NCBI GenBank assembly: GCA_904063045.1
Contig: CAJFCJ010000006.1
Location: forward strand, 1,121,771-1,185,770
Length of the DNA: 64,000 nucleotides
From: Dimorphilus gyrociliatus
Taxonomy: Eukaryota; Animalia; Annelida
Reading direction: 5' to 3'
Part shown: piece by piece, positions 39,844 to 50,015 of the stretch
How the letters are laid out: each line of letters begins with the position of its first letter
Numbering within the stretch: the first letter of the stretch is position 1
Program-made: the position numbers and the translations under genes
Notes under the pieces: generated by a model
What the model was told of the DNA's origin: nothing
What the model saw: the letters and a program-made list of their open reading frames with translations, nothing else
Database searches by the model: none

Positions 39844-40187
39844 AATTATACAGTATCTTGAAATCTTGTCTTCCATTTTCCCACCTTCAAATTATTTTAG
39901 ACACTTGAACTACTGTCTTCCAATTTCTTACTCCCCTCTATCTTATAGCTCTGCTATTTTCTATATCTTCCTGTTCTTGTCCAATACCTCTTGGTCACGA
40001 ATACAGTATAATGGCATATTATAATATTTTATTTCATAATAATATCAAGCACCGAATGAAAAATCTCGAGCTTTACAGACTTTAAACATTTAAAATCACT
40101 CAAACAAAAATTTATGATTGCAAGCCAACCTCATTTTAATTATTGTCTTTGTAACCCTGTGACTAGACGAAGATAAAGGCGACTTTT

Positions 40188-43100
40188 CTATTGAGATTCG
40201 CTGTACTGGAGGCTTAAAGAACCTGTTAAAACTCGAAAATTAACTTGGTAAGATGTTGTAACGAAGAAATACTTACGAAGTTTCGCTAAACCGTGTCCAG
40301 GTATGATCGGATTACGAAGATTTGACCGTGTAGAGGGAACTTCTGGTTTATAAAAATCGGCCAATGGAGCTTTATATTCATTTTTTCTCTCTTCGCTATT
40401 TGTCTCAAAGCTTTCAAACCTCTTTCTTTCTCTGTCACGTCGCCATTTCTCCATTCTATTGCTAACAAAATCAGGCTCGTCAATTCTTGGGTTAAAAGGT
40501 GGCAGTTTGGGTTCAATTTTGGGCGACTCAATAGGAGAAACTTGAGAACCAGGCCTGCTATTTAGTTCGTCTTCTGATAAATCTTCGATTTCAGCTGACG
40601 GAGCGGACTTAGATGTTGGTACCGGAGTTGGTTTGAATGTTGACAGTGAAGGCTGGGGTATCGTTGATTTTTCTGTAAATGATGTTGGAGAAGAGCTTTG
40701 GTCGGAAACAGTTGTATCGGAATGATTTGATATCTAAGAAGCATAACATATAATTAATAATCTGTAAGAAGCCCATATTTTTATGATTAAAGAAAAATCT
40801 TACCCTTTTATAATTCTTTCCATAATATCCGGAATCGTTGAAATTAGAATTAGTACTGATGGGATTCATAGTATAGGTCTCATATATGTCATCTTTTTTC
40901 TCAATGTCGATCGGTCTAGCTAATATGTGAGCCGCCGTATTCTTTACTGAATTACTTGATTGAACAGGTGAAGGTGGAGGACGAGAAATCTCAGATCGTC
41001 TTCTCTCCTGTCCATCATTCCAGGAAAATGCTTGATCGGCTAATCTACAATTTTCGTAATCTCGCTCTTTTTCTTTGTTAGGCTGGGTTTCATAAATAAT
41101 ATCAGTTGGTTTAGGAGCGAATTTGTCAAATATTTCCGAAACATCAGGGGGAGTTTCGGAAATCTCATCGGTATCATTTGTGGTCTCGAAATTTAAATTT
41201 GTATTGCTTATAGACTCTTCAATTGTATAACTAGGAGTACTGAGCTCATATTCGCTTTCTTCTCTTTCACTGTCAATTTTTATAGTATTATATTCTTCCT
41301 CGTTGTAAATGGTATCCTGCTGCTCCTCTGACTGATCCGAGTTGACTTTTTCTGTTGAGATAGAGGGAGATTGCAATAGGTCGATTGTCTTCATAACGTC
41401 ATCAAATAAGGAATCACCAAAGTCCAACTAAAGAGGGAAAATGAAAATTTTTTTCAATTAATAATTTATTAGTCTATAAGAAAAAGCTTACGGTTAAGTC
41501 TGGTTCTCCCGGCTCTAATTTGATACCATGTTTTCTTTGTGCTTCCTCCAAGGGCATAGTTTCTAAAACAGTCTGCGCAGGTGGATCAGCTGAATAGAAA
41601 TTGTATAAATGTATCAAATTGCAAGATATATTTTAAAAAGTATCAAATTACAACCATAATTTTTTTCCTCCAACAAATTATTGTCATAATCTTCTACGTT
41701 TCCAAATTTACTTCCGTCGTAACCAACGTGAGCTTTATGTTGCATATCTGTGGGCGAGTTAATCATGTCCTTAGTAATTGGCTTCCGGGCGGATTTTTTG
41801 TCGTTGTTTTTCTTGACATCTTGGTTACTTTTTCGACCCATTTTTGTGACTTGTGAGAGAAAAGACGAGGATCTCTGAGCAACGTTGGTTCTGCCAGAAG
41901 CTTCGCGAGTAATCGAGTCAATTGGAATAGTCTCCTTATGATTGAAAAGCCCGCAGACACCAGAATTGGATACTCCCCTCCACAATCCCTCTTCAGCACC
42001 GATATTAGGGCTACAGGTACAGAAAAGTTACATTTTTAACCGCGTAAAAACACATTAAAGCTGGTCTTACCGCTTTTCGATGACTGTTATTATATCTCTC
42101 TTTCTGTAAGGTAAGTATCCTTTCGGTACTATCGTATTTGAAAAGTCACTGATGGCCTGAACTTGTTCCGGTTTTAGCTATTGTTAATAGTACTTCATTC
42201 AGAGAATTATATATTTAGAAGAGAGAAATGAACTTGTATATATACATATAATATACAACATGAAGAAGTATACGCTCAGAGATGCAGTGTACTGCACACA
42301 TTAATAGTTAATCGAAAACTGTTACGCTTTTCATTCTAGGCATACAAAACTCATTAAATACGATTCCATTTATCAAATACGTACGCAAATAGATACTAGC
42401 TGATATGCCAGCGTCCAAATAGCTATATTCTATTTATGCGCAAATACGTGAATTTTAAATAAGTTTACTCTATTGAATTACCTAATTTATTACTAATTTC
42501 AGTAAAATAAACTTACATTTTTGTTGCTCTTTTGAGTGATCTTAACAAACCTACATTTATAGTAATCAAAAAGGCTATGAGCAGGCAACGATGCGGGAAC
42601 ACGTTTAAAATGCTTTTTAAGCAACCTTTATCATTGTGCTTTCAACATTGGCTCGCTAAATTTTTAAGCCTATTTCACCTAGTTGGTGACTAATCTAATT
42701 TGAAGACTCCTAACCTGAGGCAACCACTGAAAGAGGTTGGAAAAAGTTGAACGCTTAAACGTATCTTCTTCCCAACATTGAAGAATTAGGGCATAATACT
42801 CTTTCGTGCATAATTCGGAACACGGAAGTCGCTTTCCTCCATCCAATTCGTCTATTACCTGTAAATTGAAAATCCAATTAATTCATTATGTTTTCCGTTT
42901 GGCCAAACGTTAATTATGATATAGTTTTTGGTTATTTACATAAATTATGTGCTGGAAAAAAGCTAATATAATTGTCATTAGTGGAAAAGCTAAGATGAAA
43001 GAAATTTTATTTCAGACGGCGACACCGCGGACTAAGAGAAAAGCATATTCGTTTGCAGCGCCGCTAGTAAAATTTACCCAGCAGTTCCACCACCCAGGCG

Positions 43101-45473
43101 TCTGAGGCTAAGCTTTTTTCCTATTTGTGCGTCAGCAAGAGTCTTTGCTTAAAGATACAAAACACACTAAGTAAGTAATATCATTTTGCAATACTAAATA
43201 AGGAACAGCGTAGAAAGCGTATCTTACGTAAGGATATTTCAGCTGTTTACATAAACAAAATAACTGAAATAGTTTCGAGTACTGTCTACTTTTACTGAAT
43301 GAAATTTTTTTACGTTGAAAAATAGACACTATACTACCCTAACCAAATCTAACACTCCGAATCGCTTCATTTTAATACTGTTAATCAGATCTTAAAGCTT
43401 TCCCATCTCACTATCAATCTTTTCAGATATACAATTAGAATGACACAGCTAAACGCCTACTATGAAGCCGTTCGTGAAATCGTTTCATCCGAATCAATAG
43501 CTGGATTACCATCACACCCAACGCAACTTCTTCCCCATTTGTATATTGGGGCGCTTCGCCATGCAGAATCTTTGGCCACATTAAAGCGGTATAAAATTTC
43601 CCACGTTCTTAACGTGGCCGCTCCAATTCGACATCACGCCGTCAAATCCCCGTATGAAGGTTACCAAGATGATCTCATCTATTCCGAAATACCGATAGAA
43701 GATAAAGAAAGCTATGACATCTCAAAGCATTTTCGAGAAGCATTTTCGTTTATAGATAAGACAAAGCGGAGCAATGGTATAGCTTTGGTTCATTGTCAAT
43801 TGGGCATTAACCGGTCGGCTACAATTTGCATTGCGTACTTGATGCAATATAATAGTTGGAACATTTTGAGGACAATACAATATGTTAAGGACAAAAGACA
43901 CATATTGCTAAGTAATAAAGGTTTTAGAAAACAGCTTATTAATTGGGCACGTTCTTATAATAGATTGGATTCAATTGAATCTCATCCTACCCTGAGAAAA
44001 TTATTACAGTCTAATCATCAGGAAAAGGATGAGAAAATGGATACATATAGAGGATTTTTAGCCAAGTATAAATATTAACCTGTTGCCGTGTAAAGCCAGG
44101 CCAAGGTTGATCGCCATACGAAAACATCTCCCATAGAGTCACACCAAACGCCCAAACATCGGAAGCGCTTGTAAATTTCATACTCCGTAAACACTCCGGG
44201 GCTTGCCTATGAAACGTGCGAATGGATAGAATTTCTTAACATTTGAGTGAAAAGAGAGAACAGTAATAGTTACCAGCCGATAGGAAGTCTAAGAGAAACA
44301 TCCGTATCTTCCTTGCTAATTTCTTTGTGACCAAGAGCTCTGGATCCGAAATCACAAACTTTAATTTTGTCTGGCGAGAACACAACGATGTTGTGGGTAT
44401 TTAGATTCTTGTGTACGATTTGTTTGTTTTCTAAATAAACCATAGCGTCACATATTTGAACAGCTATATCGCATAGGCGCAAGAGATGAAAGGTAAAACG
44501 TAATTCCTTATTTACTAGGCAAGAATTTAATGATCCCATAGTAGCCAGTTCAGAGACAGTCATAACGCCATCTGGTGAATTAAGAACTACTCCGTACATC
44601 TTGATGATACGTTTATGGTCGATTTGATGCATGAATGCAACTTCTTTCATCGCATCTTCTGGGGAAACTTTACCCCGAAGAGTTTTTAGAGCAACCGGTA
44701 TTTTTCCGCCTCCCTCAATGGACCACACACCTTCTTGTACCCAACCAGTCGAGCCTGATCCCAATCTACCTCCCAAAGTTAAGGACGAGTAGGGTATTAA
44801 GTGCTGTGTAACACTTGCACGAGGGAGTGGAGGACTTTTAATATCGCTGGCATTCGATCTTGTCTTCATCTGTAAGTTCATTCAATGGTCAATCAATACA
44901 TCCTTATTAGCCTCCCCCACTTTACTGCGCATGCCCAACTCTTTAACCCTGATAAATTATCCGAACAAAATACAGTATAATAAAGGAAGAAATATATGTA
45001 TATATATAAGCGTATGCGTGTGTGTATGTATGTATGAGAGCGTGTGTGTATATGGAAACAAGGCTGCGAAAAGGCGGTAGTGACTCATATCGTAAACGCA
45101 TAACAGATGCCCTTTATTCCGATTTGTGCGAGCGTCGTGCTCTCATCAGGGAATTACAAACGTCAAAATAACGATCATAGGATAACACTTACAATCCTCT
45201 TAACTTTACCAATCTTTGAGAATTCTTGCCTGTAAAATTTTCGTAGTTTCTTAATATCCACTTGAGTCATACCCATGTTAAGTAGCTCCTCATCAGTAAT
45301 CCGCTGTTATATAATTTGTCAGCGCTCTATCAGTTATAGCTTTTTGTAATTTTAAAAATTAACTTCACCTTAAGGTCATGCACGTCCTGCGTCTCAAAGG
45401 AGCCATAATAGCGGACAAGACCTAAATGACTGAGAAAAGTGTATAGATCTTTGGATATGTCCGGCGAGGTCAT
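40188..45473 (-). CDS. Ack-family (Ack-like/PR2-type) non-receptor tyrosine kinase, SAM-kinase-SH3-CRIB; predicted pseudokinase
   Basis: SAM-like exons from ATG 45473; kinase with [37 protein letters not shown]; SH3 exons ([19 protein letters not shown]); [21 protein letters not shown]; Pro/Ser-rich tail with stop at 40188. Confidence 0.85.
43440..44078 (+). CDS. Atypical dual-specificity protein phosphatase nested antisense in the kinase gene
   Basis: [18 protein letters not shown], general-acid IED, intact [13 protein letters not shown]-loop, [16 protein letters not shown]. Single coding exon; a possible 5' UTR intron spans 43171-43426. Confidence 0.93.
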
Positions 45474-46088
45474 TCTGAAAAAGGAATCGTTTCATTGTAT
45501 TAGATTACTTCTCACAGCTGCATATTTAGCGAAAAAATAAACAGGATACTTTTAAGTTTGTCACTTCAAATCTGTTATCAGCAAATCTATCATAAAATAT
45601 GGGCTGTTAAAAAGCCTTGAGTACAAAAACAGTAATCAGGTATGCTGAAATCGGTTTGAAATCAAAAAATAAACTAGAATAGTTCTGCTGGTGGTCCTAT
45701 CAAACGTAATACGATGAAAAATGTCAATTTGATTGGACAGGCGCCAAAAATTTAAAATCTTGTAACGCTACGATTAGCATTTTAGTATCAGGTCATATTT
45801 CATTTATCGTCTGTAATTATACCGAACCAAAACAAGTTTAACATTCTAATTTATTCTACAGAGCCGAATCTTACCTCAAACACTGCCTTTCTTATTTCAT
45901 TCCTGAATATATTGACAATCAGAGACGAACACAAATTTCTGTCGATAAAAACGTAGATATCTGCCAATCAACAATTGCCTCCTTCAGATAAGTAGAGTAT
46001 TTTAGTCTTGTAGCACTGCCTGTTGTGAGTTAAAAATTTTATTTGATTTCAATCACATCACAATTAGCTCCTGGTAAAATACTTTCGA

Positions 46089-46818: not shown

Positions 46819-48449
46819 TTATAATTCAGTAGTCAAATTTGAAGTTAGACGTTGAATCCGAGTAGCATTACAAGCTTTACAAAGAATGAGATCATCTAAC
46901 GGGTAGCACCCTCTTCCATCAGCTTCGGAAGACAAAGCCAATTGACAATCATGACACTTATAGCAGTCTAGGTGGAAGCTCTTGTCCATAGCAACAATTC
47001 GAATAGTTTGAGAAGAACCGGACGAAGGCACGATTGGTTTCGAGCAGGCATAGCAGCGTGGAGCAAATTTTCTGTTTTTTAAAAAAAAAAGAGGAAATAT
47101 AAATATTACCATATGGTAAAAAAATTTGAATATTACTTATGAAAATCTTCTAGACAGTAGACTTTATTCGACGCGTCGACAGTAAACGGAACGCCATCTA
47201 ATGACTTGCTGCATACGACGCAGGAGAAGCAATTTGGATGGTATGGTTTACCAGTCGCTCTAACAATCTAATTGAACATACCAAAAAAGTTAAATTTAAG
47301 AATGAGAACAGTAACATATTATTAACTTACTCTATCCGATATAGGTTTCTTACATTGGCAACATTTCTCCAAGGTATTCTGAAAGAAAATATTAAAGTCC
47401 TTTCAAGTTTGTTCAAAATAAACATACCATGTAGCAACTTTCGCAATAAGCGTGCTTGTCCAAACAATAGAACGGTAAACCTTGCAATTCTATGACTGTT
47501 GTTCGATATTGTAATGCATGCGATTAGAAAAGTACAATTGTTGGATTTTATAATTTAGCTACAAACCACAAATCTGGCACTTGAAGCAGGCATTGTGATA
47601 GATTTGATCGATGGCTGAACATCCATTTTCCGCTCCTATTATTGCTTTAGAGCATTTGTTGCATATTCCATAAAAATCGGGTAGTTCCCTAACTGCTTTA
47701 AGATATTCTTTTGAAGCTTCTTCAGGCGTTTTATCTTGTTTCGGAGTAAGGACTCTTGGTGGACTTGGATGTCGGAATCCAGCAGCACTTGGGACGTTAA
47801 TATAATCGGGAGTAGAAATCGGCGGAGTCTTTCTTTCAGTATGTTCCGGGGATGAGGATGACGAAGTAGTTGCCGATGGTGACACAGAAGAAAGATTTTC
47901 ATTTCTCACAATTACTTTGCGTGTCGTGTAGGTAGGCCTTTGAATCGGAATTTCTCTTTCACGTTGAACTTTGGGCCTAGAAGAAGCGACCCTTCTCACT
48001 CCAATCGGAACAGTACAAAGAAGCTGGCTTGGTGCACCTTCTGGGTAGTAATTACCCCTACCTTCGAGTGGGGAACGGTTTTTTACGGGTGTAATAATCT
48101 CTTCCCTAAAAATCGTTTGTTTAGAGACAGTAGGACTTGCTGGAGAAGGGGACCTAGCGGGTGGTAACCCAGGAGAAGGAGGTCGCGAACGGTTGCCAAC
48201 TTTAACTGTGATTGTTGGTTTACCCTCTTGCGTGTCGACGGTAATCGCATCCTGACCAGAATAACGAATGTGTAATTTACCCCTGCTAGTAGGTGTTGAA
48301 GGTCTCGGAGGTGACATGTTGACTCGAACTTGCCCTTCGCCTAATCTTTGCACAGTGGCATAAAGAGGTTCCTCTATGGGCCTCGCCCTCTCGTCGCGCA
48401 TATGAAGCGCCCGCAAATCCCTCTCTATATAAAAAGGTTGATTCATCAT
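46819..48449 (-). CDS. LPP/zyxin/TRIP6-subfamily LIM protein (Pro-rich N-terminus, three LIM domains)
   Basis: LIM1 [30 protein letters not shown]2 [33 protein letters not shown]3 [35 protein letters not shown]; ends TTEL. First ATG at 48449 (the ORF track starts at a GTG). Confidence 0.9.
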
Positions 48450-50015
48450 CGTCTTCCTTAATGTGACTCTGTTGTAATAAGAATGATTCACATATAGTAA
48501 GGCAGAAAAAGCGGGAGAAAAACAACATAGGTATCTGTCCGTACAGTTCGAAATAGGCCTACATGTGATAGATGCAAATTAGAGTTCTAGTGTAAAACTT
48601 ACCAGAAAACATGTCAATCAGCCATAATTACGCCTGAACAGGATAAAAACAATAATATTCTAAACGTTCCTTCTAAAATTATTCAATGGTATAACTGTTC
48701 TCCTTGTTAAAATATTAAATAAATCTCGACTGGAAAAATATGAAACCGCTTTACGAACTCTGTAATACAGGATCTTACTACGATTTGTATTACTACTCTA
48801 AACTAATAACAGTGAGTTAAAAGTTTATTTAAGTTAATTAATCAAACAATTAATTAACACAAACGATTAGAAACATTGTTTTCTATATTTATAGTGTCAA
48901 TTTTAGGTTAATTACTCTATATTAACGAGGGACTAGTTGTTTATAAAAAACGTGCGTTTGCTGTAGTAGATAGATGGCGTACGAAAATATGTCAGATGGA
49001 GCCACATGTACACCCAGGAAAATTTAATGCACGAATGGGAAAACCAAAAAGTTTTTCAACTGCAAAACGAAAGAAAAATACAGTTGATGTTTAGAATTAT
49101 GAAAAGAATGATTAAACAAATGTTCGACATATATTGATAGTGCATTAATCATATTGAGAATAAATTGCTCCTACATGTTAAAAGCTTCGAAATCCTGGAA
49201 GGTCAAGTTTAGAAGAGAAATTATGAACAAGTGAGAAAAGGGAGGTAAGCCTGTTCTAGAGTTGATGATAATTAATAAATCTCTAGGAATTTATCACCTG
49301 TTGCTATCAATGCTATATTTTGCAGTAAGGTTGTTCGAACGGTGCGGAAAAATGTTTATTTATATCTCCTGGTATCGTACCAAACAAGTCGTTTGTCTCG
49401 TGTGTTGTAGAATAGACTGCTTGTGAACATTACTCCCAGGTTGTATAATGTTCGAATTTTCTGATAAGAGGCTTCCAATATCACTCTAGCCTTATCTAAC
49501 ACATTTTGGAAAAGAAATCATAATTGAAAAATATTTATGGAGTTATATAAGATTTCGGTCTCGCAAAGCCTTACTTTTTATATTCTCGTTTCTAATTCGT
49601 AAGAAAACAAACTTAACGAATAACAAACTACCTGGAAATTGACAATATTTTGGCAAACGGGAACGAAGGTTGAGAGCGCGAAAATGCAGCTGTTCCCAAC
49701 CGACCAAATGCACCACTTTGCAAATGGCATGATTCCGTCTGGATATCTGTTCTTTTTAGCGCTTCGTTTGCGCTTCGCGCTAAGAACCGTTTCGGTTTGC
49801 CGACGGAAAGGTCGAACTATTTTCCGGTTAGCCGGCACTACTTATGTCAAGACAAACTCAGCGACCCTTCATAGTTTGGTTCGTTTATCGTAACTAGACG
49901 CCATAACAATAACAGGAGACAGAGAGAACCTTATTATATCAAGATAAGACCGGAAATAAGAGGCATACCACAATGATTATCGACAGGGACAAACAAGGCG
50001 GAGCTTAAAAAATTA

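Follow-up and report, generated by a model that had tools for sequence, protein, structure and literature searches.

In a 64,000-nucleotide stretch of the annelid Dimorphilus gyrociliatus genome (contig CAJFCJ010000006.1, positions 1,121,771 to 1,185,770 of the forward strand; hereafter the window, whose own numbering is used throughout) a dual-specificity phosphatase (DUSP) gene lies on the plus strand within a single intron of a minus-strand gene related to the Ack/TNK tyrosine kinases, and its stop codon shares bases with the 5' splice site of this host. We think it likely that the two are an ordinary nested gene pair, tightly packed in a compact annelid genome, in which a two-exon DUSP gene with its own promoter overlaps the host at its 3' end. 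Nesting of this kind is common in animals, with antisense intronic genes amounting to several per cent of animal genes and intronic genes to ~6% of Drosophila genes (PMC3786989), and the D. gyrociliatus genome is about 78 Mb with a median intron of 66 bp (PMC7854359). The locus is real, conserved and ordinary, and is forced into a 3' overlap. Three features are particular to it: its stop codon shares bases with the donor, its 3' untranslated region (UTR) is forced onto host coding exons, and it carries a footprint at synonymous sites; new here is the finding that synonymous divergence (pS) of the host is halved over 44080-44460 (0.33 vs 0.59).

The DUSP open reading frame (ORF), as given in the ORF list, extends from ATG to TAA at 43440-44078 and encodes 212 residues. 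The coding sequence (CDS) lies, as expected of a nested gene, wholly within one host intron whose junction is confirmed by RNA (see below). This intron (42859-44079, minus strand, 1221 bp, phase 0, GT..AG) splits ...FTRQQ from VIDELDGG..., and a preliminary description of the region, made from the letters of the window, had placed an antisense DUSP in it within the C-lobe of the kinase; those coordinates proved exact by sequence, Pfam matches and the RNA junction. On the minus strand the host donor reads CAACAG/GTTAAT at 44080/44079, the donor GT being 44079-44078, and the acceptor reads TTTACAG/GTAATAGAC at 42859/42858. Read on the plus strand, the boundary is ...TATAAATATTAAC/CTGTTGCC, with the DUSP TAA at 44076-44078 and a C at 44079, and the TAA is the reverse complement of host donor positions +2 to +4. 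The sequence thus bears out two further points of the preliminary description, that the DUSP stop overlaps the host donor GTTAAT and that the intron has no space for a DUSP 3'UTR. Because the stop abuts the donor, termination and the 3'UTR must use host sequence, and the transcription unit does outgrow the intron, with RNA contigs reaching 44107-44109, past the intron end at 44079.

The RNA data were assembled contigs from four runs over 40000-45900, which inform on junctions and presence and not on strand, true ends or reliable levels. Contigs from run X9 had no differences from the window and therefore derive from the same organism, and those from X2 and X4 had ~8% differences and therefore derive from a relative. 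Minus-strand junctions (CT..AC) defined eleven host exons; three of the introns are larger and the others measure 54-70 bp. The junction that joins the host across the nested DUSP (44080/42858, CT..AC, 1221 bases skipped) was present in X9 at high depth. In X2 and X4 the host contig extends 4 nt into the intron and there has a loose end, which consists of the relative's exon B sequence; as this loose end continues exon C into exon B, the same host splice is used in the relative. A plus-strand GT..AG junction (43170/43427) found in X9, X2 and X4 gives the DUSP two exons, the second beginning at 43427 with the ATG 13 nt further on. The DUSP is thus transcribed with its own junction and the host uses the donor at 44079, as the preliminary description had supposed; its view of the gene as an ORF plus upstream region held for the ORF, and the upstream part was amended, since it holds a spliced 5'UTR exon (~43071-43170).

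DUSP contigs ended at 44107 in X9 and at 44109 in X2 and X4, 30 nt past the host donor, and these ends are the point at which the 31-mer graph branches with host exon B; no poly(A) loose end was reported at 44107-44109. By depth arithmetic, no X9 contig lay over 42859-43073 or 43171-43426, which indicates that host pre-mRNA was not assembled and that the reads crossing 44079 represent spliced DUSP RNA. Plus-strand-spliced DUSP contigs span 44074-44109 and hence constitute antisense RNA complementary to the host 5' splice site. The preliminary description had the DUSP mRNA running antisense across both the host donor and the exon that encodes APE and SDVWAFG: the contigs support this as far as 30 nt past the donor, and for the rest of the exon we infer it from the observations on the 3' overlap described below. 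A loose end at 44010 beside an AG was considered as the junction to a foreign 5' exon of the DUSP and rejected, as its 30-mer maps to contig C14, which shares only ~15 nt with the window; it is a chance partial alignment.

The nesting is kept in a related species. The closest database protein to the DUSP (P0001, 82% amino acid identity) is encoded at a locus (L011) in which the DUSP is followed, 192 bp on, by a 203-residue kinase ORF on the opposite strand, with CRIB and LIM/Forkhead neighbours as here. The spacing, the stop/donor overlap and the splicing are all retained at a synonymous substitution rate (dS) of ~1, and the overlap sequence TATAAATATTAACCTGTTG is identical in the two species. 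Two noncoding blocks in the host intron were also conserved relative to an intronic background of 50-60% identity: 42940-43114, around the start of the DUSP 5' exon (80-90%), and 43225-43325, in the DUSP's own intron (90-97%). Judged by this identity profile, the block at 42940 is a probable DUSP promoter and 43225-43325 a putative intronic regulatory element; the latter, which no RNA contig covered, could be an enhancer, or else a small RNA absent from poly(A) libraries. We rejected noncoding RNA genes as an explanation of the blocks and prefer a cis-regulatory role, given that they had no Rfam match and folded no convincingly better than shuffles (z of -0.97, -1.98, 0.02 and -0.43). In several respects the locus is like other animal protein-coding genes nested antisense in host introns, for example Drosophila 2mit in timeless2 (PMC3786989): a CDS and its promoter sit in one opposite-strand host intron, the host splices across them and the arrangement is kept in a relative; it differs in that the DUSP unit outgrows the intron, its stop shares bases with the donor, and its 3'UTR is antisense to host coding exons.

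The first AATAAA past the DUSP stop is at 44434 and is conserved; since it falls in host coding sequence, its conservation alone is not diagnostic. A pS scan, codon by codon over the entire host CDS, compared the two species and found one long trough of synonymous divergence, from ~44485 to 44090, the longest and deepest in ~900 host codons. The 104 host codons of 44080-44460 had a pS of 0.33, the remaining 804 codons of the CDS had 0.59, and the lowest 104-codon block clear of the region had 0.496. When only codons for identical amino acids were counted, the first two values were unchanged (0.33 and 0.59) and the remaining kinase domain had a pS of 0.49; the permutation p for 44080-44460 in the identical-amino-acid comparison was 0.00045. 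In addition, the 67-bp host intron (44207-44273) is still present in X4 contig 14, from which the next one (44869/45193) is spliced out, and X4 was the sole run with DUSP depth greater than host depth. Together, the end of the trough near the AATAAA at 44434 and the retention in X4 contig 14 suggest a DUSP 3'UTR of ~380 nt lying over host exons, and the lowered synonymous divergence of the host codons suggests that the overlap is long and constrained.

Taken as an ordinary nested pair, the locus would work as follows. The DUSP would be transcribed from its own promoter and 5'UTR exon inside the host intron, and its mRNA, seen to +30 nt past the host donor, would probably run on for ~380 nt as far as the AATAAA at 44434, and so be antisense to part of exon A as well as to the 67-bp intron and exon B. 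Host codons in the overlap would then be constrained twice over, and this would account for the halving of their synonymous divergence. At the whole-animal level both genes are expressed together and host splicing is normal; a sense-antisense effect is possible.

Several points weigh against this account. Beyond 44109 the DUSP 3' end is unmapped, the evidence to that point being contigs only, and a non-canonical signal, TATAAA at 44067 or a TGTAAA in exon B itself, could make the mRNA stop within that exon. The trough coincides with the most conserved kinase motifs, where nonsynonymous divergence (pN) is low too, and with the ends of exons, in which splicing enhancers operate; its boundary was matched to the AATAAA after the scan. 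Just one related species was compared, and a more distant relative of the DUSP (P0002, 44% identity) had no kinase ORF nearby, judged from the gene list alone. The alternative is a shorter overlap, which we consider possible but somewhat doubtful: the DUSP mRNA would be cleaved ~30-130 nt past its stop, inside exon B, at a non-canonical signal such as TATAAA (44067-44072), and the low pS further on would reflect kinase-core codons and exonic splicing signals. Consistent with early cleavage, this TATAAA is conserved and precedes the stop by 6 nt, the X9 contigs leave the 67-bp intron uncovered, and a second kinase segment (44695-44608) likewise combines low pS with low pN. However, the contigs reach the branch point at 44107-44109 without a poly(A) loose end, the 67-bp intron is retained, with the next spliced, in the very run where DUSP depth exceeds that of the host, and the trough keeps its length, its depth and its low value in identical-amino-acid codons against the rest of the kinase domain.

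A different question is whether the overlap is a regulatory device. The DUSP mRNA or its transcription would mask the host 5' splice site and exons, or double-stranded RNA would form with the host mRNA, such that in cells expressing the phosphatase the Ack-like pseudokinase is reduced or mis-spliced, or the reverse; we regard this as unlikely. It is favored by the fact that DUSP RNA does cross the donor, by the conservation of the overlap at dS ~1, by the unusually conserved synonymous sites of the overlapped host exons, and by precedent. The antisense transcript ZEB2-AS1, by pairing with a 5' splice site, brings about intron retention (PMC5838512), and nested genes can give host intron retention and premature polyadenylation (PMC3192792). 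As in ZEB2, an opposite-strand RNA here is complementary to the host donor and the adjoining exon (PMC5838512); unlike ZEB2-AS1, that RNA is the 3'UTR of a protein-coding mRNA, and the contigs gave no sign of retention of the nested intron or of another effect on splicing. Against a device, both RNAs were found in the same whole-animal bulk libraries, three in number, with the host junction in use and well represented. Outside the DUSP exons, no assembled contig retained the nested intron, bulk contigs being blind to cell-specific effects; for the neighbouring 537-bp intron, by contrast, a retained copy did assemble. X9 had no editing-type differences, a plain 3'UTR or splicing enhancers predict the same synonymous constraint, and there is no known functional or biochemical link between the DUSP and the host protein. 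The co-presence of the two RNAs and the normal host splicing argue against obligatory exclusion at the whole-animal level, a scale that leaves single cells aside. It is similarly improbable, in our estimate, that the ~380-nt overlap is a selected device by which phosphatase expression tunes the splicing, stability or translation of the pseudokinase mRNA in the same cells, or the reverse, with the conserved synonymous sites as the footprint of RNA-RNA pairing. A kinase/phosphatase switch, as put forward in the preliminary description, is speculation; the pairing of a kinase with a phosphatase may be coincidental, all the more because the host appears catalytically dead.

The encoded phosphatase has the marks of a working enzyme. 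It matched Pfam DSPc (PF00782) with an E-value of 1e-33 and 116.4 bits (cut-off 33.5), over profile positions 1-132 of 133, and the active-site loop HCxxGxxR(S/T) is intact as HCQLGINRS, with nucleophile C119 and R125, and identical in the relative. The best solved relatives were the catalytic domains of DUSP2, DUSP5, DUSP1 and DUSP4 (1m3g, 2g6z, 6apx and 3ezz; E-values 4e-25 to 1.6e-22), the DUSP2 and DUSP5 structure entries being Cys-to-Ser mutants at the active-site loop. In these alignments the general acid falls in IPIED88, opposite the IPVED of DUSP2 and DUSP5, and an AYLM motif is also aligned. Compared with the relative, the ratio of nonsynonymous to synonymous substitution rates (dN/dS) was 0.10 over 211 codons at a dS of ~1.0, and therefore the protein is under purifying selection. 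The Pfam match, the alignment to DUSP2 and DUSP5 and this ratio agree with the earlier observation of an intact catalytic motif, and the phosphatase is predicted to be active from its intact residues and its dN/dS. These same features, together with the spliced 5'UTR exon, the conserved promoter block and RNA contigs from both species that are comparable in order of magnitude to host depths, make it very hard to believe in an untranslated or decaying relic, for instance a retrocopy or an ORF arisen by chance, with plus-strand RNA as noise, for which one might cite a CDS without introns and the absence of the protein from annotated protein sets at ≥90% identity. The intronless CDS says nothing on a retrocopy origin, and we set that argument aside as uninformative, because DUSP paralogues in this genome, which are 28-46% identical over matching stretches only, also have single-exon catalytic domains. 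A lookup of the exact protein in public contigs likewise found none on record.

With the MAP-kinase phosphatases (MKPs) DUSP2, DUSP5, DUSP1 and DUSP4 the nested DUSP shares the HCxxGxxRS loop, the general-acid Asp in IPxED, and AYLM. It differs from them in having no N-terminal rhodanese/CH2 MAPK-binding domain, as is found in classical MKPs (there was no Rhodanese match by Pfam). The DSPc domain begins at residue 26-34 of 212, with 25 residues before the catalytic domain; a further 8 residues are inserted after strand 2, and the C-terminal tail is 40 residues long. As read from its sequence, then, the protein is an atypical DUSP by architecture with an MKP-like catalytic domain and not a classical MKP.

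Domain searches of the host were run exon by exon, and a joined spliced model was used solely for frames and substitution rates. Three minus-strand exons matched consecutive stretches of PK_Tyr_Ser-Thr, namely 44274-44869 (profile positions 2-170), 44080-44206 (180-211) and 42715-42858 (214-256), with scores of 115, 46 and 29 bits, respectively. A PBD/CRIB match scored 25.6 bits (cut-off 21.3); SAM_TNK scored 21 bits on a half-domain exon, under its cut-off of 25, so that this domain is weakly supported. The order of segments, a partial SAM_TNK match, kinase domain, SH3-like segment and CRIB/PBD, is that of the Ack/TNK non-receptor tyrosine kinases. The host differs from these in its catalytic loop, which is HKNLNTHN where HRDLAARN is expected, in the window and in the relative; with the catalytic Asp missing, the host is therefore a predicted pseudokinase. 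We take the gene to be a divergent Ack/TNK paralogue whose product is probably catalytically dead. A second Ack-like gene (L018, 751-2151; contig C13, ~1286284-1287684), a single ORF of 466 residues, keeps HRDLAARN, DFG, APE, the SH3-like segment and CRIB, and has no intron at the nested position. The features of the locus are collected in Table 1.

Table 1. Features of the nested DUSP and its host kinase gene, in window coordinates.
Feature	Position	Strand	Evidence
Host intron holding the DUSP gene	42859..44079	-	Sequence; X9 junction 42858/44080; X2/X4 loose end
Candidate promoter: conserved noncoding block upstream of DUSP 5' exon	42940..43070	+	Identity profile vs relative
DUSP exon 1 (5'UTR, no upstream ATG; 5' end approximate)	43071..43170	+	X9/X2/X4 contigs; X2 contig start ~43070
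DUSP 5'UTR intron, 256 bp	43171..43426	+	GT..AG junction; no RNA contig coverage inside
DUSP CDS (D88, C119, R125, HCQLGINRS; MKP-like catalytic domain alone)	43440..44078	+	Pfam DSPc; dN/dS
Putative DUSP 3'UTR, antisense to exon B, 67-bp intron and 3' part of exon A	44079..44460	+	Contigs to 44109; putative for the remainder
First canonical AATAAA past DUSP stop (candidate polyadenylation signal)	44434..44439	+	Sequence, conserved
Host exon C, kinase domain end	42715..42858	-	Pfam positions 214-256; junctions
Host exon B (APE...SDVWAFG...FTRQQ), donor overlaps DUSP stop	44080..44206	-	Pfam; junctions; 92% identity to relative
Host exon A, kinase N-lobe to activation segment, HKNLNTHN	44274..44869	-	Pfam 3.9e-33; junctions; motif conserved in relative

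Some further observations concern the host transcripts and the surrounding sequence. X9 contained a minus-strand junction at 43078/42858 (CT..AC, with a 25-nt side) that implies an exon overlapping the DUSP 5'UTR exon. As an alternative first exon or poison exon of the host this was rejected, given its in-frame stops, its little depth and a donor GT that is AT in the relative, and the junction was not seen among the relative's contigs; the transcript is probably minor, either cryptic or from a divergent promoter. An X9 contig of depth 15 (42150-42735) runs unspliced through the 537-bp host intron at 42178-42714, which may be low-level retention or another transcript. In all three transcriptome runs the 3' part of the host (40000-42177) had ~2.5x the k-mer depth of the kinase part (44080-44869); this could be 3' bias or an internal start, contig depth being unreliable. 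Between its SAM and kinase exons the host has a 323-bp intron (44870-45192) that is 80% identical to the relative, compared with 57-75% for the short introns, and that contains TG/CA-rich simple repeats; a mir-297 match within it at 44992-45060 was sub-threshold (34 bits, gathering score 90). Directly upstream of the host is a LIM-domain gene (46819-48491, minus strand), which in the contig of the relative is followed by a Forkhead gene, and gene order is kept between the two species.

By itself the locus reveals no new mechanism, as antisense nesting and 3' overlaps are widespread. It does flag an unannotated phosphatase gene, and it offers a clean, conserved example of genome compaction making two genes share bases, with a measurable footprint. 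It also lends itself to testing, in a natural setting, whether a convergent sense-antisense overlap of coding genes has regulatory consequences.

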